Shown one piece after another: positions 40,527 through 50,198 of a DNA stretch of 64,000 nucleotides. Every line of letters starts with the position of its first letter. The stretch's first letter is position 1. The position numbers and the translations under genes were made by a program. The notes beneath the pieces were generated by a model. It was given only the letters and a program-made list of their open reading frames with translations. It made no database searches and was not told the origin of the DNA. The stretch spans positions 189,665 through 253,664 of IMG/VR virus record IMGVR_UViG_3300017917_002466. One strand, 5' to 3'.

Positions 40527-40565
40527 GAAAAGAAAGGAATAAAGTCATTACAACTTTATTCCCCT
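40527..40565 (-). terminator. intrinsic terminator
   Basis: GGAATAAAGT-loop-ACTTTATTCC followed by TTTCTTTT. Confidence 0.75.
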
Positions 40566-40577
40566 CTAATACGAAGA

Positions 40578-41537: not shown

Positions 41538-42083
41538 TTAAAAAATACGATCATTTAGTTTTATAAAAATATCATCAATCAAAATTGGTTTAAATCCTAT
41601 CATTTCAACGGAACAATTAAACATATTACTTTTTAGTTTATCATTTGCTTCTTTATCATTATGAATATGCCCACACAATTCAATATCTTCATCAAAATCA
41701 TAAATTGGTTCGTGACAAAGTAATATTGTTTTATCTTTATATTTAAGACTAATAGGACCATCATACGCATTAATTGTAGTATATTCGTTCAAATAAGTAT
41801 CGTGATTTCCTAGAAGAAATTTTTTAATACCTGGTAAACTATCATAAAGTATTTGTGCGGTGGCATATTTGTTTGGATGACCAATTACCCAATCGCCCAA
41901 ATGAAATATAATATCTTCTGGTGATACTGTTTCACACCAATTCATATACATCAGTTCATTCATTTGTTCAATGCTTATAAATTGCTTTCTAAGCCCAAAA
42001 TCAAATGCTAAACGACTATGAAACCAATGACAATCACTAATAACATAAAAAGGTTTATCAAATTCTCCAATAAAATTAATCAA
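41538..42083 (-). CDS. calcineurin-like metallophosphoesterase
   Basis: ISDCH, HLGD, GNHD, LCHEP, GHIH, N.SVE. Confidence 0.92.
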
Positions 42084-42601
42084 TGAAAACTCCTTTCAAG
42101 TTGTTCTTTATAAACTTGTAACTTCAAAAATTTCTCTGTACTTCCACCCTTATCTGGATGGTATTTCAAAACAAGTGATCTATAGCTTCTTACTAATTCT
42201 TCCTTTGTAAAGTTTGGTTTCAATCCCAAGAAAACTAAAGCTTCATTCTTTACTTCAGCAATATTAATCTTCGTTGTAGAGTATCTAAACTCTAAGTCTA
42301 GAAACTTCTTATTGATGATGAAGATATAATAGTTCAATCCAATGTTTCTAATTCTACTGAATACAGATACCCAAATCAAATTACAGTTGGCATTCTTTAC
42401 AGAATTATATATAGTATCCATATACTTCAAGGTTTTATTAACGGCTTCAACAAAATTATGTGGACAACCTAAAATTATCTTACCGTTCTCATCAGAAATC
42501 TCATTGTAGAAATCTATCCACAACTGGTCTATGATATAGGATGTTTGATCTGGGTGTGCGCGTAAGTAGTTAACCAACTCAACTACATTCAACATTATCA
42601 A
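42080..42601 (-). CDS. J-domain (DnaJ-like) protein
   Basis: C-terminal LGL......[18 protein letters not shown]. Confidence 0.85.
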
Positions 42602-42611
42602 CCTCTTTCAA

Positions 42612-43196
42612 TTATCTTTTGAACGAATAATAGAAGTCTACTAAACTTCTATCCTTCTTTACTTTTTCAAATACTTCCTTGGAGTCTTTATTGGTTCTTA
42701 TGATTTTGTAATCTTCTACGGGGTTTCTTTCGCCGGTTTCTGATCTTTGCTGGGATTGCTTGATTGCGACTTCTTCGGGAACATCTATGTGAATGAGCAC
42801 TGTTGTAAATCCATTTGCCTTTGCAAGCTGAAGTTTCGCAATAGTTCCATTTAGATTTGCATTAGTACCAGTATGAATGAAGGATTCTTTTTTAGTAAAG
42901 GCTATTGGGAGTTCTTTTTTAAACTGAGAGGTAGCTTTACCGGCGAGTTCTCTTTTGTATTCTCCGCCGCCTATCTTAGAAGCTAAAATATCTACATCAT
43001 AAACTGGTAAGTTACCAACTACTTTCTTTAGAACATTATCAATGAAGTATGTCTTTCCTGAACCAATTCCACCACCAACGGAAATAAAGAGCTTATCTTC
43101 TAAATAGGTCTTCAAGTCGTCAATATTGTTTAACGACCTACCATAAAAGGTATCGCTCTCGTAAAACTCAATAAAGTTATGGATTTGGTAGGTCAT
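42612..43196 (-). CDS. P-loop kinase (zeta-toxin/AAA_33-like)
   Basis: GGGIGSGKT, DVD, SF...GT, GF...LI.I......A; NFIEFYES tag. Confidence 0.8.
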   Translation of the reverse strand: MTYQIHNFIEFYESDTFYGRSLNNIDDLKTYLEDKLFISVGGGIGSGKTYFIDNVLKKVVGNLPVYDVDILASKIGGGEYKRELAGKATSQFKKELPIAFTKKESFIHTGTNANLNGTIAKLQLAKANGFTTVLIHIDVPEEVAIKQSQQRSETGERNPVEDYKIIRTNKDSKEVFEKVKKDRSLVDFYYSFKR

Positions 43197-43593
43197 AAGA
43201 AGAATCCCCTCGCATTGCATCATCTACGGCTAAAGGTTTATAACTCTGTGGTGGTTTTGGTTCTTCCTTTGGAAGTATCTTTACCTTCTCCACCTTATCT
43301 TGAATGTTTCGCAGAAATTTACTCTTTGCTTTATTAATGATTTCGTGAATTCTCTGCTTGACCTTCTTTATATATGAGTTATCACCTTGCATATACTGTC
43401 GGATTTCGTTTCCAACAGCCACATCAAAATCGCCGTAGTTAGGGAATCTTCTTTCAAGATAGTTACAAAGTCTTGAAACAAATGCAGGATTTAAACCAAC
43501 TGAAGCAGACTCTTCCTCTATCAGAAGTTTTACTTCATTGGTGAAAGCTTTGGCTTCGCTTTCTTGAAAATAATGATCTTGAAATTTCTTCAT
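43177..43593 (-). CDS. hypothetical protein
   Basis: MKKFQDHYFQESEA tag. Confidence 0.7.
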   Translation of the reverse strand: MKKFQDHYFQESEAKAFTNEVKLLIEEESASVGLNPAFVSRLCNYLERRFPNYGDFDVAVGNEIRQYMQGDNSYIKKVKQRIHEIINKAKSKFLRNIQDKVEKVKILPKEEPKPPQSYKPLAVDDAMRGDSSYDLPNP

Positions 43594-44540
43594 TATAGCA
43601 TTGTCTTTTCTGAAAGGTATATAGTAGATTCTTTCAAATGACTTTCAAGATTACTTCTTAACCTCTTTATAACTTCGTCTTCATTCTGTTTCAAACAAAA
43701 TGCCGATACAATGAATTCTCTTAGCTGTGCAAAGGTGAAATCCTTTGTCTTCTCAGCCAACTCCATAATCCTCTTTTCATCCTGATGTTCCTTTAGCTTT
43801 GCTTTTAAGTAGGCATATCTTCCAGTTGTTGGTGGATTTCCAATCTCTATCTTCCTATCAAATCTGGAAGCTCTAAGAATTCTAGGAGGAAGTCTATCAA
43901 TATAGTTAGTTGTTCCAAGAAACAATACATTGTTGGTCTGTGCATCACCATCAAAAAGCTCAAGGATAGCGTGTTCTCCATACTTTACAATCTCGTCAAT
44001 GTCTTCCATAATGACAAGAATCTTTCTCTCTGGCTCAACTTCTCTTACAACTTTAAGTGCTTCAACAAGGTCGTGTGCTTCTCTAGTAATGAAAACTATG
44101 TTACCCTTACTTACCATATCTTCCATTGCTAACTTCAAAAGTGCACTCTTACCACTTCCCGGTTGACCATAAAGAAGAACTCCTCTCTTATGAGTGAATC
44201 CATACTTCTTAAAATCATCCTTCAATGTCCAGAAGTTATCAATCTCTTGAAGTATCTTAGTATAACGAGAATCTTCAAAGCGAAGAATATCATCAGTATT
44301 AATATCGTGAACTTCAAAGAAAACACCAGACATATTTCTCTGTATTCTGAAAACACCAGCGGGAATAGTCTTCTCGGTTACTACTTCACCAACAGGCTGA
44401 AAAGAATTACCTTGCACGATATACTTCTTGTAAATCTGCTTTCTCTTACTTGGTTGTGTTGAAAGAACCTTTGGACCAATATCAATTGGTTCAGCCTTTA
44501 AACAGGATTGATTTTCTTTGATAAATTCTCTAAAGCTCAT
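43593..44540 (-). CDS. classical AAA+ ATPase
   Basis: RGVLLYGQPGSGKS, VIMEDID, TTN..D.L...I.R.SRFD second region of homology; MSFREFIKE tag. Confidence 0.92.
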   Translation of the reverse strand: MSFREFIKENQSCLKAEPIDIGPKVLSTQPSKRKQIYKKYIVQGNSFQPVGEVVTEKTIPAGVFRIQRNMSGVFFEVHDINTDDILRFEDSRYTKILQEIDNFWTLKDDFKKYGFTHKRGVLLYGQPGSGKSALLKLAMEDMVSKGNIVFITREAHDLVEALKVVREVEPERKILVIMEDIDEIVKYGEHAILELFDGDAQTNNVLFLGTTNYIDRLPPRILRASRFDRKIEIGNPPTTGRYAYLKAKLKEHQDEKRIMELAEKTKDFTFAQLREFIVSAFCLKQNEDEVIKRLRSNLESHLKESTIYLSEKTML

Positions 44541-44839
44541 ATTAAAACCCCCTTTCCTAAAATATCTTCAACCATCCATCTTGCTCTTGTTTGAATCTTT
44601 GCAATAAGCTCTTCTTTATCTTGAACTACTGCACCTTTCTTAATGGCTATTCCAATTGCTTCAGCAGCTTCTCTTGCCTTTATCATAGCGTTACTTAACT
44701 TTATAACATTTGAATTAAGCAACTTTTGATAGTCTTTTCCTTTTGGTTGTTGTGCCAAAGGGGATTCTATTGGCTCTTCACCAATGGCTTCACCTAGGTA
44801 TCTTTCAGCTTCACCTAGGTATTTTTTGTAATCTTTCAT
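44537..44839 (-). CDS. hypothetical protein with duplicated tag
   Basis: MKDYKKYLGEAERYLGEAIGE; late promoter at 44858-44865. Confidence 0.75.
   Translation of the reverse strand: MKDYKKYLGEAERYLGEAIGEEPIESPLAQQPKGKDYQKLLNSNVIKLSNAMIKAREAAEAIGIAIKKGAVVQDKEELIAKIQTRARWMVEDILGKGVLI
44787..44822. repeat. 15-bp direct repeat, 21-bp period (YLGEA x2)
   Basis: GCTTCACCTAGGTAT at 44787 and 44808. Confidence 0.85.
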
Positions 44840-44857
44840 ATTACTTACCCCGTATAA

Positions 44858-44865
44858 TATTTATA
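44858..44865 (-). promoter_or_regulatory. T4-type late promoter
   Basis: TATAAATA overlapping the stop codon of the upstream gene. Confidence 0.6.
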
Positions 44866-46273
44866 AATTCTTTAATCTTATAATATTAGCTATTTCTTCT
44901 TTTTCTTCGGTTGTTAAAATCTCTGGTGTCCATTTCATTGATTTTAGATATTCCAAATTGTTTCTTATATTAGAAGCTGAAATTTTTTCATCCGATTCTT
45001 CGCCCACTCTACCGAATTCCATAATCCGTACTTTAGAGTATTTATCTTTATGTTTTACAAAATAATCATACTTCTTCGTATCGCCTTCTGTTCCTCCGAT
45101 AAGAACCTGACTAACTTCGTTCTGGTGAGTATCCACCCAATCGTATATATCTTTAACCGGTGTTATTTTACTTAACAATATTTCAACTGGTTTGTTGATA
45201 TGCCTTATATAAACTTCCCATATCTTTTTAGATTGTTCGGCTGTGATAGTTTCTCCTTCTCTCAGCTTATGACCAATAAAAATGATTATCTTATCAGACT
45301 GTTTTGATAGTTGTTCAACTATACTAAAATGTCCTTTGTGTGGTGGTTTAAACCCACCGGCATACAATCCTATAATTCCAGCATCACTACTTTCCCAAAA
45401 GTAATGTTCAACAAAGTTGCCAGAGAAAGCCTGTTTGATTTTATTAATGGCTCCCAATTTCATTTTTTCTTTTGCTGTTCCAACTTCACCAGATTTAACT
45501 GATACTAAAGATTGAAAGGTACCAGGGATTCTTCTTCTTGATCTTGGCTGTTTAACTTGTTTATTAACTGAATCTAATAGTTCATCGAAGCTACTATATA
45601 TGTTATAATTGTGAAACAGTTTTTCCACATCAGGCCAATTAGTTGTAGACCAAACATCTATATGTCCAACATCTCTACTATCTTTAACATCAACGACTCT
45701 TAAAGTTAACTTATTAGAGGAAAGATTAAATTCATACTCTTGATCTTTTTCTAATGCGGGCACTTTTCTAATTCCTAATTTCTTAAAAACAGTATTGTAA
45801 TCTTCTTCTAACAACAACACTTTAGCCAAAGCCACCAGTATGCCTTGTTTATCTGCCGGTAGATTTAGGAACTGTTCTTTGAAATCATATTCCTCTGTGG
45901 ACAAAGCAATGATATTATCTATTTGAATATTACCTTCAGCCCCAACAATAGGATACAAAATCGTAATTATTTCACCTGAATTATAATACTTACGTCCTTT
46001 ATATAGTGAAGATTGGAAAGGAACAATAACTCTATCTGGCATAGATGATACATAATCTATAATTGCTTTTTTGACTGCTTTCTTATCGTTTCCCTTAAAA
46101 TGAACTACTATATCTAAATCACCATAATCATCTTTGGATTTTATTTTAGCACTACCTGTTAATTTGGCATTTTGAAAATCAGGAATATTTTGTAGTACTT
46201 TTCTCTGATAATCAGCAAAAGTTCTATCAACATTGCTTTTTAGTATTCTGGAACCACCAGCAACTCCACTCAT
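44861..46273 (-). CDS. pol-beta-like nucleotidyltransferase fused to an HxGH cytidylyl/adenylyltransferase domain
   Basis: TGS......GDLD and QID; GGFKPPHKGH, SASNIR. Confidence 0.8.
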   Translation of the reverse strand: MSGVAGGSRILKSNVDRTFADYQRKVLQNIPDFQNAKLTGSAKIKSKDDYGDLDIVVHFKGNDKKAVKKAIIDYVSSMPDRVIVPFQSSLYKGRKYYNSGEIITILYPIVGAEGNIQIDNIIALSTEEYDFKEQFLNLPADKQGILVALAKVLLLEEDYNTVFKKLGIRKVPALEKDQEYEFNLSSNKLTLRVVDVKDSRDVGHIDVWSTTNWPDVEKLFHNYNIYSSFDELLDSVNKQVKQPRSRRRIPGTFQSLVSVKSGEVGTAKEKMKLGAINKIKQAFSGNFVEHYFWESSDAGIIGLYAGGFKPPHKGHFSIVEQLSKQSDKIIIFIGHKLREGETITAEQSKKIWEVYIRHINKPVEILLSKITPVKDIYDWVDTHQNEVSQVLIGGTEGDTKKYDYFVKHKDKYSKVRIMEFGRVGEESDEKISASNIRNNLEYLKSMKWTPEILTTEEKEEIANIIRLKNL

Positions 46274-47226
46274 TATATTCTCCTATCTTCAAAATAAATA
46301 TCTTCAAACTTTAGCGATTCGGTTTTATACTTTATAAGTTTAGAATTGTCTGGTAAAAACTTTCCTTTTAATCCAAGTCTATCTTGGTTTTTAATCCAGT
46401 ATTCTTGAAGGTCTTCTGGTATATCTGCTCTTGTACTATCTAATATCTTTAGGTAAGTATCGTACAATTTATTCAAATCTTCTTTAGATAGATTAGCTCT
46501 TACAAATTTTTGTAGCTTAAAATAGTCTTCCAGTATATTTTCGTTTATATCAAACTTATATATTTTGTTTAAAAGTTCAATAGCTTCTTTTGGATTGGAA
46601 GCTGCCATCTCTTGCGTTTCTTTATTCTTCACACCATAATTATGCGAGAAGGTATATCCCTTGATTGCATAAAGGGCTAACATAAGTTGTGTTCTGTGCA
46701 ATCCTTTTACATTACCGCTATATGTCGATGAATAATATGCGAAACTAAGCCAATCAATATTACCAACATTCAAATCTATTTGAACCCAATCTTTGAGTTT
46801 CTTTCCCGAAGAATCGAATTGTGGGAAAGCAAAAAACAAAGAACCACCAATACTACCTTTAGTATCTAAATGAATATCCTTGACTTTTTCAAGAATTTTT
46901 TCTGATAGAGCCACTAAAATAGCTCTTTTCATAATTTGCTGGTCTGTGGAAGTTTTTGACCTTTTCTTAAAATTATTGAAAAGACTATTGATATGTTCTT
47001 GGTCTAAATTCCATTCTTTGATGTTCTTAAAAATATCTTCGGATATAGCCAAGTCTATATCACCAGAAACATCCTTCTTTCCTACTGAACCCAGTGTTCT
47101 AATATCTTTAAAGTATTTCCGAGCTTTAGGAAAAACAGTGGCCAACTCTTCATAGAACTTGGCAAGAGTTGGTTCAATGTTTTCCTTGCGAATCGAAGTT
47201 GTTAAATCAAAAACATTTCCACCCAT
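46273..47226 (-). CDS. pol-beta-like nucleotidyltransferase
   Basis: MGGNVF start, LGSVGKK..SGDIDLA, VQIDL, KG.HR. Confidence 0.8.
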   Translation of the reverse strand: MGGNVFDLTTSIRKENIEPTLAKFYEELATVFPKARKYFKDIRTLGSVGKKDVSGDIDLAISEDIFKNIKEWNLDQEHINSLFNNFKKRSKTSTDQQIMKRAILVALSEKILEKVKDIHLDTKGSIGGSLFFAFPQFDSSGKKLKDWVQIDLNVGNIDWLSFAYYSSTYSGNVKGLHRTQLMLALYAIKGYTFSHNYGVKNKETQEMAASNPKEAIELLNKIYKFDINENILEDYFKLQKFVRANLSKEDLNKLYDTYLKILDSTRADIPEDLQEYWIKNQDRLGLKGKFLPDNSKLIKYKTESLKFEDIYFEDRRI

Positions 47227-47248
47227 TATTAGTTCCTTTCTTTAATAG

Positions 47249-47277
47249 ATAATAACATTTTCTTTTTCAAAAATCAA
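47249..47277 (-). promoter_or_regulatory. possible sigma70-type promoter
   Basis: TTGATT-17 nt-TATTAT; shares AAAAGAAAATGTTAT with the 40802-40830 promoter. Confidence 0.5.
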
Positions 47278-47310
47278 CAAGCCAACCAAATTATTAGTTT
47301 GATTGGCTTG
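47270..47310 (-). terminator. intrinsic terminator
   Basis: CAAGCCAATCAAA-loop-TTTGGTTGGCTTG followed by TTGATTTTT. Confidence 0.7.
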
Positions 47311-47361
47311 TCTTCAAATCAATTCCTCTCTTTTTGTTTATTTCAACTTGAAGCCATTTCC

Positions 47362-49410
47362 TTATCCCTTGAAACCACCTTTCTTATATTCTGGTGGCAA
47401 AGCTGGTGCACTAATCTTCTCTACTTTTTGACCAGTCTTACCCGGCTTAGCTGTAAAGCTTCCCTTTGGAGCAGCCTTGGAAGGAGCCTTTGGTGCACTA
47501 CCAACCTTCTCAATCTTCTTTGGTGGTGCTTTTGGCTTTGCTGTCAATGCTGTTGATGGGCCTTTCTTAGCAGGAGAAGATGGTGCAGATGGAATCTTCT
47601 CAATCTTCTCACCTGGCTTGCTTGGCTTTGCTGTCAACGCTGCTGTTGGGCCCTTGACAACTGGTGCCTTTGGAGCTGGCTTAATTGAAGCAATAGTCTG
47701 ATTGATAACACCTGGCTTAGAAGTTAATCCACCACCTTGAGTAGTTGCCATCTTTGGAGGTGTCAATGCATCTTCGTCAAGATCAAAGTATTTATTAGCG
47801 GCAATCTTTACAAAGCTAAGAGACTCTTCCTGACTTCCAGAGGCTTCTTCATCATCGTCTTCTGATTCCTCTCCCTCTTTTTCATCATCCTCAGATTCCT
47901 TTGGTTTCTCTGCTTCTTCTTCAGCAGGAGCAGCTTCTTCCTCACCACCAAGTTCAGCAGAAGTCTTCTGAAGCAACCATTCAAACGGGTCGCCAGTTCT
48001 TGCCTTCATTGTTCCATATGGCATTTCATCTGCATAGTAATCCATCAATGCCTGATAAAGCTCATCTGATGGATCGTTCTGTGGGTCTGCTATCCAAGCC
48101 TTAAGCTCTTCAAACTGTTCAGGAGAAAGGGCTTTCTGAAGTCCAACTGATCCTAGCTCTTCCTCACCCTTATCACAAGGAACACATTCTTCTGCACCGG
48201 CTGGGCAAGACTTTTCCTCTGCTTTCTCAGAATCTTCTAATTTTTCTGTTTCTTCTTCAGCATTAGGTGAAACTGCACTCTTTGCTAGTTCACCAAGGGT
48301 CTGTTCCATTTCTTCAATCTGCTCAAGATCAAAATAGTTTTCTGTTCCTTCCTTATCAATACAAATAACTTCGTTATTCTCAGTAATAGAATTGACCTTA
48401 TACCACTTGCTTTCAACCTTTACAAGAGTATTGATAAGCTTTTGAAGATCAAGACTCTCAAGTTCAGTAGAACCAATTACACGAACAGGAGCAACGATAC
48501 ATTCTTCTGCATCGCCTTCTTCCTCACCTTCACCGGCGGCAATATCTTCCCAATCAATTTCCCCAGCATCCTCAGGCTCTTCACCTGCATCCTCTGGTTC
48601 CTCGCCAGCATCCTCAGGCTCTTCACCTGCGTCTTCTGGCTCTTCACTAACATCCTCTGATTCATCACCAAACTCATCAGCTTCAGAAACAAGCTTCTTA
48701 TTACTTGAAGTAGATTCTTCTTCAGTTCCAGAAATTTCTTCCTCGGATGCACCGGCTCCCTCTGATTCTCCCTCGGCCGGTTCTTCCTCGGACTCTCCCT
48801 TCTCAACCTTAAATCCCTTGAAAAGATTCTCAAGTGAATCTACAAATGCCTTTGCTTCTTCTTCGTCTTCAAAATCGTGTTCAGACTTTTCAAGACCAGT
48901 GTTTTCAGAAGGCTCAACCGTTACTTTGTTATCCACAACGGAAACTTTTACTACCTTCTCATCTTCTCCTTCTCCACCAACCGATCCTCCCATTTCTGTT
49001 CCAAGTTCCTCAGTTGGCTCTACCTCGTCCATTTCTTCCTTGACTACATCCTTCTTACCTTTCTTACTTTCAGTTTCCATTCCAGTAACAGAAGTACGTG
49101 TTGAACCCTTCTGAACATCTCCTGTATTAATAATAATTTTAACATCCCCTTCTTCTAAAGAGTTTATTTTTTCAATAATATAATTCAAATTTTCTTTAAC
49201 AAAAATAGAATCTATATTTTTAGGAGAAATTTTTGGATTTACAAACTCATTTTGAATTTTAAAGATAGCATTCTTTTTATCAATATATGGTTCGTCAAAT
49301 GCTGCTTTAATTACTTCAATTACTTTATTCCATTTTTCAGAAATAATCTTCTCAGTAGAAGAAACATCTTCTTTATAATTTTCCTTTAAATAGCTTAAAA
49401 ATTCCAACAT
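47362..49410 (-). CDS. large acidic, low-complexity head core/internal-like protein with Pro/Lys-rich tail
   Basis: AGGAG SD before MLEFLSYLKE tag; Glu-rich body; EEPEDAG repeats; C-terminal TAKP..P..KIEK repeats. Confidence 0.75.
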   Translation of the reverse strand: MLEFLSYLKENYKEDVSSTEKIISEKWNKVIEVIKAAFDEPYIDKKNAIFKIQNEFVNPKISPKNIDSIFVKENLNYIIEKINSLEEGDVKIIINTGDVQKGSTRTSVTGMETESKKGKKDVVKEEMDEVEPTEELGTEMGGSVGGEGEDEKVVKVSVVDNKVTVEPSENTGLEKSEHDFEDEEEAKAFVDSLENLFKGFKVEKGESEEEPAEGESEGAGASEEEISGTEEESTSSNKKLVSEADEFGDESEDVSEEPEDAGEEPEDAGEEPEDAGEEPEDAGEIDWEDIAAGEGEEEGDAEECIVAPVRVIGSTELESLDLQKLINTLVKVESKWYKVNSITENNEVICIDKEGTENYFDLEQIEEMEQTLGELAKSAVSPNAEEETEKLEDSEKAEEKSCPAGAEECVPCDKGEEELGSVGLQKALSPEQFEELKAWIADPQNDPSDELYQALMDYYADEMPYGTMKARTGDPFEWLLQKTSAELGGEEEAAPAEEEAEKPKESEDDEKEGEESEDDDEEASGSQEESLSFVKIAANKYFDLDEDALTPPKMATTQGGGLTSKPGVINQTIASIKPAPKAPVVKGPTAALTAKPSKPGEKIEKIPSAPSSPAKKGPSTALTAKPKAPPKKIEKVGSAPKAPSKAAPKGSFTAKPGKTGQKVEKISAPALPPEYKKGGFKG
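48562..48645. repeat. 4 x 21-bp tandem repeat (EEPEDAG)
   Basis: direct reading of DNA and protein. Confidence 0.9.
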
Positions 49411-49491
49411 ATCTTTTCTCCTTTTTGGTCGTTTTCTAAAGCTTTCAATTTTTTCTTTTTCTATTTTACAAATATTACAATTTTTTTTCAT
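49411..49491 (-). pseudogene. N-terminal zinc-finger remnant of a homing endonuclease, in frame with the next gene
   Basis: MKKNCNICKIEK....F.KR resembles the MKxCxxCxxEK...F.K start of HNH/endo-VII type endonucleases. Confidence 0.5.
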
Positions 49492-49499
49492 ACAATCCC

Positions 49500-49590
49500 C
49501 CAAGACAAGGAAATCTCCAAGACTTTTAGTATTTTAAAGGAAAAAGTAAAGTCTTGGTTCTACTTCTTGTCGGGAGCTACCCTATCCTTT
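49500..49590 (-). ncRNA. C4-antisense-like three-stem RNA plus two downstream target sites
   Basis: AAAGGA/TCCTTT closing stem, GGG-TAGCT-CCC hairpin, AAGTAGA-ACCAAGAC-TTTACTT hairpin; loop complementary to GTCTTGG at 49517-49523 and 49500-49506 (next to RBS). Confidence 0.55.
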
Positions 49591-49591
49591 T

Positions 49592-49777
49592 TTAACCATC
49601 AATTTCTTCAGTTCCTTCTCTGTCTAAAGAACAATCTCCAACTAATTTATTTTCAGTGTTGCTAAAGTCCAATTCACTTGGTTCTTCTTCAACTTTCTGT
49701 TCTAACCCATAAAACTCTTCAAAATCCTCAAAGTCTTCAAAGTCATTCTCATCACAATAGTATTTATCTTTAACCAT
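49592..49777 (-). CDS. small acidic hypothetical protein
   Basis: AAGGAG SD; overlaps the regA stop. Confidence 0.65.
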   Translation of the reverse strand: MVKDKYYCDENDFEDFEDFEEFYGLEQKVEEEPSELDFSNTENKLVGDCSLDREGTEEIDG

Positions 49778-50198
49778 TTGAAGACTCCTTACTTGTATTT
49801 ATAGAATTTATACTTCTAAAATTGAACTTATGACTAACTTTCCAATCTTGTTTCTGATTATAAGGAAGAACAAATACAAATTTATTATGTGGTTCTATTC
49901 TTTCATTCGCAACTTCTATTAAACCCCACGATTTTAAACAAAAAGCAATTGCATTTCTTCTAAGTATATCATCCTCACAAATAGCATTATAAGCAAAATC
50001 TCTTGTTAAAAGAAACATCTGTTTAAAATGAACTAAATATTTTTTATTATCTTGGTCATAAAGATAACAAGAAGGATACAAAATCTTCTTTTTCTTATTA
50101 GCGATACCAATACGATTAAGTGTTTCTTTAATAACTTTATCGTCAACTAAAACTTTTATTTCCAATAAGTCCTTTTCAATTTCCATATTTTCCTCCAA
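49770..50198 (-). CDS. regA: T4 RegA-like translational repressor
   Basis: KETL.RIGIAN...K.LY.SC.L.....Y.VHFK.MF, D..RRN.IA..L..WGLI, K..W...K. Confidence 0.92.
   Translation of the reverse strand: MEENMEIEKDLLEIKVLVDDKVIKETLNRIGIANKKKKILYPSCYLYDQDNKKYLVHFKQMFLLTRDFAYNAICEDDILRRNAIAFCLKSWGLIEVANERIEPHNKFVFVLPYNQKQDWKVSHKFNFRSINSINTSKESSNG

Follow-up and report, generated by a model that had tools for sequence, protein, structure and literature searches.

The closest described systems fall into four groups. Minimal family X polymerases (PolX) carry a GS motif, a DxD motif and a third Asp in the palm, followed by a thumb-like subdomain of helices and a β-hairpin, and ASFV Pol X has neither the 8-kDa nor the fingers domain of canonical PolX. 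NadM and the archaeal NMNATs (Francisella NadM, 2qjt; M. jannaschii MJ0541, 1f9a) have a Rossmann-like HIGH fold with GxFxPxHxGH and ISxxxxR motifs. The end-healing systems of bacterial Pnkp and T4 Pnk combine a kinase, a phosphatase and an enzyme that seals or adds, and the RlaP and CCA-adding enzymes of jumbo phages are nucleotidyltransferases (NTases) of the pol-beta superfamily from large phages. The locus described here, in a 64,000-nucleotide stretch of an IMG/VR virus record (the window), resembles each of them in part. Its adjacent genes A and B share the PolX palm motifs and the thumb-like subdomain and, like ASFV Pol X, have no 8-kDa or fingers domain; B also has the fold and both motifs of the NMNATs. 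The NTases share an apparent transcription unit with an AAA_33/Zeta-type kinase and with a calcineurin-like phosphoesterase, and the A/B pairing is reminiscent of the split CC- and A-adding enzymes.

Gene A (46273-47226, minus strand) encodes 317 aa that match no Pfam, PHROG or NCBIfam family, with a predicted family-X-polymerase-like palm and thumb and a C-terminal helical extension. It carries GS-x7-GDIDL and QID motifs. Within the GS-x7-GDID motif (residues 46-58; 47053-47091, minus strand) G46, S47, D56 and D58 are unchanged in 54 relatives with identities down to 31%, and Q149 and the putative third catalytic carboxylate, D151 (46774-46776, minus strand), are invariant in the same alignment. 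In the AlphaFold2 model of A (pLDDT 88) the first motif sits where strand 56-62 begins, and strand 143-155 carries D151. Gene B (44861-46273, minus strand; 470 aa) contains GS-x9-GDLDI and QID motifs followed by GGFKPPHKGH. Its residues 1-290 (45404-46273, minus strand) form a second predicted family-X-polymerase-like domain, in which G40, D52, D54, Q117 and D119 are invariant in a diverse alignment (model pLDDT 88). The catalytic sets GS/DxD/D are thus intact in both proteins, and in both models adjacent β-strands carry the two-Asp motif and the third Asp, an arrangement resembling the pol-beta fold.

Comparison of the B N-domain with A by hhalign (probability 73%, E 3e-5) indicates that the two are homologous, if remote, paralogues, and the pair of divergent NTases proposed in an earlier, sequence-only reading of this DNA is therefore genuine. 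When the model of A was compared with TdT, pol beta, ASFV PolX and pol lambda, VIA Z was about 9 over 163-182 residues, a value modestly over the background stated for VIA; for ASFV PolX, Z was 8.9 with 163 residues aligned out of a 176-residue chain. Alignments of A with other NTases were confined to the palm (97-116 residues, in one case 132; Z ≤7.7). B residues 3-231 gave Z 11-12 against the same four polymerases, and the N-domain gave 10.8 against ASFV Pol X. The top 50 Foldseek matches of each protein were all PolX, and one fused relative scores at the PF14792 cut-off. Profile searches detected no relationship of A to any polymerase family. Judging from the models, the folds of both A and the B N-domain correspond to the palm and thumb of a minimal family X DNA polymerase, a likeness that the sequence-only reading had overlooked. 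The stop codon of A overlaps the start codon of B in a TAATG (46271-46275, minus strand) with an AGGAG upstream, both read directly from the sequence, which suggests that A and B are translationally coupled.

Residues 297-470 of B (44861-45385, minus strand) constitute, by fold, profile and motifs, an NMNAT-like HIGH-type adenylyltransferase domain with HxGH and ISxxxxR. A PF01467 (CTP_transf_like) match that is above cut-off (E 4e-6) spans residues 303-438, and H312, H315, K430, S432 and R437 are invariant. The NMNAT likeness raised in the earlier reading held in the structural comparison: VIA Z was 13.5 for the NadM NMNAT, 12.6 for PPAT and 12.0 for the M. jannaschii NMNAT. NadM was also best in a profile search against the PDB (E 0.0018), and the modelled domain is accordingly closest to NadM and the archaeal NMNATs, with scores far under the NMNAT equivalog cut-offs. 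Since the Pfam match is to a cytidylyltransferase-like family, the domain might instead, in the way of cytidylyltransferases, make an NDP-activated alcohol or sugar, from which the NTases would transfer the phospho-group onto DNA or a glycan in the manner of LicD or FKRP. NTase-fold phosphotransferases that use CDP-alcohols do exist and provide a precedent. However, no LicD- or FKRP-type structure was found among the matches, cytidylyltransferases reach a Z of only about 10, below both NMNAT and PPAT, and the conserved neighbours include no glycosyltransferase or sugar-pathway genes, so that this reading appears highly improbable.

The A, B N-domain and HIGH trio recurs in other phages, which for these three parts supports the sequence-only reading, and only this trio is conserved. 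B adjoins A in 78 of 80 loci. Enough sequence beyond A was available at 120 loci, of which 103 have the B N-domain and 101 the HIGH domain downstream. In three further lineages a standalone HIGH gene of 180-192 aa follows the gene for the B N-domain, and the three parts also occur in the fusions A-Bn, HIGH-A-Bn, A-HIGH-EXT, HIGH-A, A-HIGH and EXT-A-Bn. The trio is thus obligatorily linked or fused across many phage lineages, and the cassette is widespread and confined to viruses; the literature searched contained no account of it. Between the window's phage and Flavobacterium phage immuto (gp088/gp089), identity is 59% for A and 49% for B, in contrast to 22-33% for capsid, portal and terminase, and this conservation far above that of the structural genes suggests horizontal spread.

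Relatives of up to 900-1549 aa, in which the domain order is shuffled, often carry an HExxH metallopeptidase-like domain with weak matches to DUF6782 and Peptidase_M91. Such architectures recall the polyvalent proteins (PMC5512222) and, together with the restriction to viruses and the probable horizontal spread, could point to an injected or early anti-defence effector, which would be processed by its own peptidase and then alter or intercept proteins, nucleic acids or nucleotide signals of the host. We consider this quite unlikely, since the cassette is located in replication modules and is unconnected with MuF or with genes for the head or for packaging, CD-NTases and other signal-related NTases are similar at the palm level at most, and the HExxH domain is missing from the window's cassette and is not encoded elsewhere in the genome.

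The same genome encodes, 50 kb from the cassette, an island of canonical NadV, a NadD-like NMNAT and a Nudix protein, and elsewhere it encodes Rnl2 and RlaP. Their presence weakens two of the three proposals of the sequence-only reading, NAD rebuilding and RNA end healing; none of the observations bears on the third, protein nucleotidylation. In the first, the HIGH domain would be an NMNAT that restores NAD+ after attack by a host NADase, with the PolX-like domains as accessory or regulatory parts. The NadM-like structural and profile matches, the intact HxGH and ISxxxxR motifs and the annotation of the immuto homologue as an NMNAT agree with such a role, and NAD salvage is established in phages, where NadM is reported to be always accompanied by NadV (PMC9503650). 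Contrary to that pairing, NadV was absent from five cassette-bearing phages whose genomes are 93-100% complete. With the island present, B would be redundant for NAD salvage; moreover, the NADase products nicotinamide and ADP-ribose are not recyclable by NMNAT alone, and such a role gives no account of why the HIGH domain is fused to two invariant PolX-like active sites. We therefore regard NAD+ counter-defence as improbable.

All genes listed in the sequence-only reading are present at their positions on the minus strand. Downstream of B lie C (44537-44839; 100 aa, no family match), a classical-clade AAA+ ATPase, D (43593-44540; 315 aa, PF00004 E 6e-16), E (43177-43593; 138 aa), a Zeta-toxin/AAA_33-type P-loop kinase, F (42612-43223; both families above cut-off), a protein with a C-terminal J domain, G (42080-42601; PF00226 E 2e-8, residues 124-168 with an HPD motif), and a calcineurin-like metallophosphoesterase, H (41538-42083; PF00149 E 1e-7, phrog_547 E 1e-31, PDB 1xm7 E 8e-10). 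C lies outside the conserved cassette and was found in none of the related loci. Only in the closest relatives does E come after B (2 of 161 loci; 56-63% identical in L086-L090). D was found at none of the 161 related loci, is absent from the closest relatives and is an insertion found only in the window's phage. Within 8 kb of A, none of the AAA+, kinase, J-domain and phosphoesterase genes occurs in 80 immuto-like loci, and by lineage, counted as 36 clusters of A, the kinase and the J-domain gene are each near A in three and the phosphoesterase in two. D, F, G and H are lineage-specific neighbours with no evolutionary link to the trio, and the eight-gene module proposed earlier does not hold as a conserved unit. 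These neighbours thus show the lack of conserved linkage that the sequence-only reading itself had named as refuting, and the Pnkp-like healing reading therefore draws only on local adjacency.

On such a reading, once host anticodon nucleases have cut an RNA or tRNA, the kinase and phosphoesterase would first heal its ends, the NTases would re-add lost 3' nucleotides by untemplated synthesis, as RlaP or the split CC- and A-adding enzymes do, and the HIGH domain would activate a 5' phosphate or provide a cofactor. Phage RNA-repair sets of this healing-plus-adding logic are known (PMC7824862). In the window's phage, as in its closest relatives, the kinase and/or the metallophosphoesterase lies 2-5 genes downstream, and a phosphatase (NT5C or MPE) is common near A. 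The distant locus L092 has an A-HIGH-EXT fusion directly preceded by the gene for a 308-aa Zeta-like kinase and followed downstream by an NT5C phosphatase. On the other hand, the linkage is as sparse as counted above, Rnl2 and RlaP are already encoded elsewhere, no RNA ligase lies near the cassette and the window has no tRNA genes. A and B match no RlaP or CCA-enzyme family (no CCA family among their Pfam matches at E up to 0.1) and their alignments with RNA-specific NTases cover no more than the palm, and their conserved company belongs to DNA replication. RNA end repair is thus an unlikely function.

The early expression suggested previously was based on a sigma70-like promoter, TTGATT-17-TATTAT (47249-47277, minus strand; 9/12 match). 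Sites of this grade number 45 in the 10-kb region and 36.9 ± 6.8 in shuffles, so the match is at chance level and lends no support to early expression. The site is overlapped by the T-tract of a strong terminator-like hairpin with a 15-bp stem (47276-47312, minus strand), which lies between an upstream acidic protein gene and A. The sole isolate with the cassette infects Flavobacterium, hence the host group is likely Bacteroidota; the TTGACA/TATAAT consensus is not known to be used by Bacteroidota. The next strong terminator-like hairpin lies downstream (40531-40567, minus strand), and the two bracketing hairpins outline a possible A-to-H transcription unit, in which D, F, G and H are probably transcribed together with A and B in the window's phage.

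The usual neighbours of the trio are DnaG primase (94 of 161 related loci), a PD-(D/E)XK exonuclease (87 of 161), DnaB, SbcCD and an NT5C nucleotidase. The gene order is DnaG, exonuclease, A, B, NT5C; in other lineages DnaB and a fused SbcCD are near the cassette, and at one locus (L091) gp32 and a 5'-3' exonuclease. This conserved company had also escaped the sequence-only reading; for phage genes, neighbourhood is a weak guide to function, and many of the loci are related by phylogeny. Our tentative preference, held at slightly under even confidence, is that A and B form one unit with three catalytic domains in the phage DNA replication/repair machinery, not an RNA-healing or NAD module with the kinase and phosphoesterase. 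The best reading of this unit is an accessory in which a PolX-like 3'-end nucleotidyltransferase pair has a dedicated adenylyltransferase. Both PolX-like subunits would act jointly on nucleic-acid 3' ends, for example in end extension or in gap filling once a primer is removed, and the appended adenylyltransferase would supply an adenylylated product required at the same site. Most economically, the product would be NAD+, remade from the NMN set free each time an NAD-dependent DNA ligase seals a nick. The window's phage has a ligase of this type, and relatives that have no ligase of their own would use that of the host; this recycling role is purely what we infer. The structural matches fit DNA or RNA substrates and templated or untemplated synthesis alike, the PPAT score of the HIGH domain nearly equals that of NMNAT, and the replication/repair reading leaves the need for two PolX-like subunits and the frequent HExxH domain unaccounted for.

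Compared with Pnkp and T4 Pnk, the kinase and phosphoesterase are here separate genes, not conserved with the cassette, and no ligase-type adenylyltransferase is nearby. Unlike RlaP, A and B have no PF10127 match and coexist with a separate RlaP gene; they differ from RlaP and the CCA enzymes in having no RNA ligase association and in a likeness that extends to the PolX thumb, which those families lack. In contrast to NadM, where the partner is a Nudix domain, the HIGH domain of B is fused to a PolX-like domain and falls under the NMNAT equivalog cut-offs, and the cassette occurs in near-complete genomes without NadV and, in the present genome, beside a separate canonical NMNAT. Relative to family X polymerases, A shows no detectable sequence-profile relationship and polymerase activity is putative; A and B each add a C-terminal helical region of about 55-80 residues, and they always form a paralogous pair linked or fused to a HIGH adenylyltransferase.

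The sequence-only reading described genes A (46273-47226, minus strand, 317 aa) and B (44861-46273, minus strand, 470 aa) as a pair of divergent nucleotidyltransferases, and this description holds. A and the N-terminal domain of B (Bn, residues 1-290) are real paralogues, with superposed catalytic motifs in a profile-profile comparison (144 columns, probability 73%, E 3e-5). A carries the motifs GS-x7-GDID and QID, and no match to it was found in Pfam, PHROG or NCBIfam. Structure prediction followed by a Foldseek search, proposed earlier as a check, gave confident AlphaFold2 models for both proteins (pLDDT 88 for each, from alignments of 24 homologues for A and 29 for B), and the top-50 PDB matches for A and B were all family X polymerases (pol beta, lambda, mu and Thermus PolX). 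The VIA structure search, which is independent of Foldseek, placed A at Z 8.3-9.0 to TdT, pol beta, ASFV Pol X, pol lambda and Leishmania pol beta, with 163 residues aligned to the 176-residue chain of ASFV Pol X, and residues 3-231 of B at Z 10.8-11.9 to the same polymerases. These PolX alignments, 163-182 residues long, span palm and thumb, and the thumb subdomain is thus present after the palm in both A and B; TUTases, PAPs, OAS and CD-NTases matched A over the palm only (about 100 residues, Z up to 7.7).

The family alignment of A (54 sequences, down to 31% identity) has G46, S47, D56, D58, Q149, D151 and P270 as invariant residues, and the invariant residues of Bn are G40, D52, D54, Q117 and D119. 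Misaligned catalytic residues had been named as evidence that would count against the pair; instead, the motifs superpose between A and Bn, and in the models of A and B the positions of the catalytic residues on the strands agree with the pol-beta palm (GS, DxD, and the third carboxylate on a neighbouring strand). Sequence comparison of A with PDB and Pfam gave chance-level matches only, as a single sequence, as 24- and 54-sequence profiles and with the 54 members taken one by one. The cut-off of PF14792 was reached by the B-type domain of one fused relative (25.7 vs 25 bits), and the domain is carried by 13% of the members of one Atlas cluster. The 8-kDa (dRP lyase) and HhH fingers domains are absent from A and B, whose models start at the palm, and the pol beta matches begin at its residue 142. 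Taken together, the models suggest that A and Bn are distant paralogues with the build of a minimal enzyme like ASFV Pol X, and that both are apparently active. A complex prediction for A and B scored 0.00, which speaks neither for nor against binding. An uncharacterised 277-aa protein of the Agrobacterium jumbo phage Atu_ph07 (BFVD A0A2L0UZB9) is related to A by structure (TM 0.56/0.63, 19% identity), and would extend the A family beyond Bacteroidota-type phages.

The C-terminal part of B (HIGH, residues 297-470) matches CTP_transf_like at residues 303-438 and carries the motifs GGFKPPHKGH (306-315) and ISASNIR (431-437), with H312, H315, K430, S432 and R437 invariant. When residues 298-470 were searched with VIA, the best scores were Z 13.5 to the Francisella NadM NMNAT (2qjt), 12.6 to PPAT and 12.0 to the M. 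jannaschii NMNAT; PPAT and ATP sulfurylase (11.2) score nearly as well as NadM. NadM was also the best PDB match of the B family profile (E 0.0018), with GGFKPPHKGH aligned on GRFQPFHKGH. From its modeled fold and motifs HIGH is apparently an active adenylyltransferase. Judged by sequence, the cassette formed by A, Bn and HIGH would nevertheless be hard to assign to the known families: HIGH falls short of the curated NMNAT equivalog cut-offs (17-32 bits vs 103-449), A is without a PolX profile match, and for B-type domains the PolX profile signal is that of PF14792. The cassette also lacks the canonical PolX accessory domains.

The A family comprises about 1850 clusters at 90% identity, or 513 when the threshold is 50%, and was found in viruses only in the databases searched. 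B adjoins A in 78 of 80 viral contigs carrying A. In immuto-like phages, named after Flavobacterium phage immuto, the genes run from DnaG primase through PD-(D/E)XK exonuclease, A, a long B (about 900 aa) and NT5C nucleotidase to a Zn-ribbon protein. A second, more diverse set of loci, gathered with an alignment query, contained the trio in other settings, namely primase-DnaB...A-B, HIGH-primase-A-fused SbcCD, and A and Bn with a standalone HIGH gene (180-192 aa, above the PF01467 cut-off). Where at least 3.5 kb of sequence follows A (120 loci), Bn was present in 103, HIGH in 101 and both in 94, and a HExxH metallopeptidase-like extension (EXT) in 73. Counted by lineage (36 clusters of A at 70% identity), Bn was found nearby in 23, HIGH in 24 and HExxH in 14, and primase, exonuclease and NT5C in 13, 8 and 8, respectively. 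Cluster representatives included the fusions A-Bn, HIGH-A-Bn, A-HIGH-EXT, HIGH-A, A-HIGH and EXT-A-Bn; a single-protein query detected no close relatives of one A-HIGH-EXT fusion (P0276) in viral contigs.

Further domains have been recruited to the cassette, DUF6321 (E 3e-18) after HIGH in a 983-aa form of B (L138:7936-10887) and DUF5661 in a 1549-aa relative (P0266). Immuto-like phages also have an unannotated 146-aa ORF directly upstream of the primase (L042:5146-5586, homologues in 62 loci) with a protein-kinase-like glycine loop and a VKK motif. The immuto gene product gp100 (L042:2616-3053), recorded as 'NAD synthetase', is by Pfam a SegE-type GIY-YIG homing endonuclease (E 3e-26). The 193-aa immuto gene after NT5C was considered as a kinase and rejected, as it encodes a Zn-ribbon protein without a P-loop.

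The viral record to which the window belongs is 253,664 bp long and has direct terminal repeats; the window makes up its final 64 kb. Its probable source is a pond metagenome, which is a DNA data set and the only sequencing run found to contain the stretch. No isolated phage matched the region in a megablast search, and the only isolates with cassette homologues (of B) are the three recorded for immuto, a T4-like myovirus of 160 kb. Kinship with immuto is distant, with 22-33% identity for capsid, portal, protease, sheath and terminase, against 59% for A and 49% for B. The G+C content is 0.34-0.36 at 42000-50000 and 0.25-0.30 in the flanks. The raised G+C and the identity of A and B, far above that of the structural genes, suggest either that the cassette has spread horizontally or that it is under very strong constraint.

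All genes at 40.5-49.5 kb are on the minus strand and closely packed; the stop of A and the start of B overlap in TAATG, with AGGAG upstream. A hairpin with a 15-bp stem and a T-run (47312-47276, minus strand) and a second hairpin (40567-40531, minus strand) bracket genes A to H, which makes their co-transcription plausible. A sigma-70-like promoter had been placed at 47277-47249 as a sign of early expression. The site exists as a 9/12 match, but such matches occur at chance level (45 vs 36.9 +/- 6.8 in shuffles), and it overlaps the T-run of the first hairpin. Directly upstream of A lies a gene for a 713-aa, highly acidic low-complexity protein with EPEDAGE repeats and a K/P-rich C-terminus (47362-49503, minus strand), and this position is kept in the closest relatives.

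Downstream of B, also on the minus strand, the domain calls made from sequence were confirmed together with that of B (CTP_transf_like). D belongs to the classical AAA ATPases and F to the P-loop kinases of the AAA_33/Zeta-toxin type; G has a J domain with the HPD motif at its end, and H is a calcineurin-like phosphoesterase (phrog_547, E 1e-31). The proposal that all eight genes form one module survives only for the A/Bn/HIGH core. In the closest relatives (A 68-75% identical) the acidic protein gene is followed by A, B, E, the kinase, an optional phosphoesterase and the J-domain gene, and gene C together with the AAA+ gene D is an insertion absent from them and seen only in the window phage. 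None of C to H was found within 8 kb of A in 80 immuto-like contigs, and among the 36 lineages kinase, phosphoesterase and J domain occur in 3, 2 and 3, respectively. Across 161 loci an F-like kinase was present in three, with one other Zeta-like kinase, and an H-like phosphoesterase in two. A different Zeta-like kinase lies directly upstream of an A-HIGH-EXT fusion in a distant locus (L092) and leaves the kinase link open as a minority observation. The eight genes thus do not form a unit, but the three domains at their core make up a real system that is widespread and uncharacterised.

In a lineage unrelated to the window phage, a 273-aa J-domain protein and a ClpB-like Hsp100 (756 aa) are encoded 3-5 genes upstream of A-B (L138, 3789-6059 and the adjoining gene; likewise in L115, L131, L133, L134, L140-L142 and L146). 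This echo of the window's J-domain and AAA+ genes may be a coincidence or a chaperone link.

NAD rebuilding, one of the roles first suggested, was weakened by the analysis. The same genome has a complete NAD-salvage island 4.7-9.3 kb before the window start (G000:C1:180323-185004), with genes for NadV/NAPRTase (388 aa, E 5e-52), a Nudix protein (212 aa) and, adjoining NadV, a NadD-like NMNAT distinct from HIGH (198 aa, E 1e-16, GGSFNPPHISH); comparable islands are reported in Flavobacterium jumbophages (PMC13573597). No NadV (PF04095) was found in five complete (93-100%) cassette-bearing genomes, although phage NadM is reported always to occur with NadV (PMC9503650). B is therefore unlikely to act simply in salvage.

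RNA end repair was weakened as well. No tRNA genes were found in the window, conservation does not tie the kinase and phosphoesterase to the cassette, and neither A nor B matched RlaP (PF10127). A separate RNA-repair set, far from the cassette, consists of an Rnl2-type RNA ligase (G000:C1:116575-117084) and an RlaP nucleotidyltransferase (175446-176078). The cassette locus itself contains no ligase partner, Rnl2 lying at 116.6 kb of the genome and LigA at about 1.5-2.2 kb of the window. The adenylation domain of this NAD-dependent DNA ligase (PF01653, E 2e-42; window about 1453-2154, G000:191117-191818, minus strand) sits in a 645-aa open frame extending further than the match, and no ATP-dependent ligase was found in the genome.

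The cassette most likely assists the phage in replicating or repairing its DNA. This reading comes from the resemblance to PolX folds, from the pairing and fusion of the domains, and from neighbouring genes of replication and recombination. The PolX-like pair would add nucleotides at 3' ends, and at that same place HIGH would provide an adenylylated compound, most simply NAD+ remade from the NMN that an NAD-dependent ligase releases. This ligase would be the phage's own in the window phage; among six complete immuto-like cassette genomes five are without a recognisable DNA ligase and one has an ATP-dependent enzyme, so that most would depend on the host ligase. Such a replication role leaves the need for two PolX-like subunits and the function of HExxH unexplained. 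It is very improbable that the trio is a new kind of DNA-end enzyme made of PolX and HIGH folds. In one version of this idea HIGH would adenylylate a 5' phosphate or make NAD+ in situ, and a PolX-like site would use the activated end or an unusual primer; if true, ends would be sealed as by a ligase, or primed and extended, by proteins that have neither the classical ligase nor the classical primase fold. Also considered was 7-deazaguanine DNA modification, which immuto has and which, together with a divergent PolA, is treated in the immuto papers; a link to it was rejected, since no homologues of the immuto dpdA or que genes were found in the genome (blastp E <= 1e-8).

Family X polymerases occur in cells, asfarviruses and giant viruses, but are not known as a conserved part of tailed-phage replication modules. 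No description of the cassette was found in the literature searched (surveys of jumbo-phage and viral NAD systems, PolX/NMNAT in phages, DUF5661 and DUF6782), and public records label its proteins 'hypothetical' or 'NMNAT/NadR'. The 'NadR' label wrongly raises counts of phage NAD-salvage genes, and knowledge of the substrate would correct it. The cassette is a virus-only, obligatory PolX-like pair tied to an NMNAT-like adenylyltransferase and, between distant phages, is far better conserved than capsid genes. Knowing its substrate would fill a gap in the DNA replication and repair of large aquatic (Bacteroidota-type) phages, and the cassette could yield small new template-dependent or terminal transferases.

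Several known systems invite comparison. Polyvalent phage proteins are large multidomain polypeptides with a processing metallopeptidase, delivered with the DNA. Relatives reach 670-1549 aa and have a HExxH domain; the window's B lacks this domain, and a profile search over six frames found no HExxH extension elsewhere in its genome. In Pnkp and T4 Pnk the kinase and phosphatase are fused or conserved with the adding or sealing enzyme, unlike the window's kinase and phosphoesterase (3 and 2 of 36 lineages, 0/80 immuto-like loci). RlaP is associated with RNA ligase, and the genome's own RlaP (175.4-176.1 kb) is a gene other than A or B. The closest known enzymes are minimal PolX enzymes and NadM-type NMNATs: ASFV Pol X, like A and B, is without the 8-kDa and fingers domains, and NadM and the archaeal NMNATs share with HIGH the HxGH and ISxxxxR motifs on a Rossmann-like fold.
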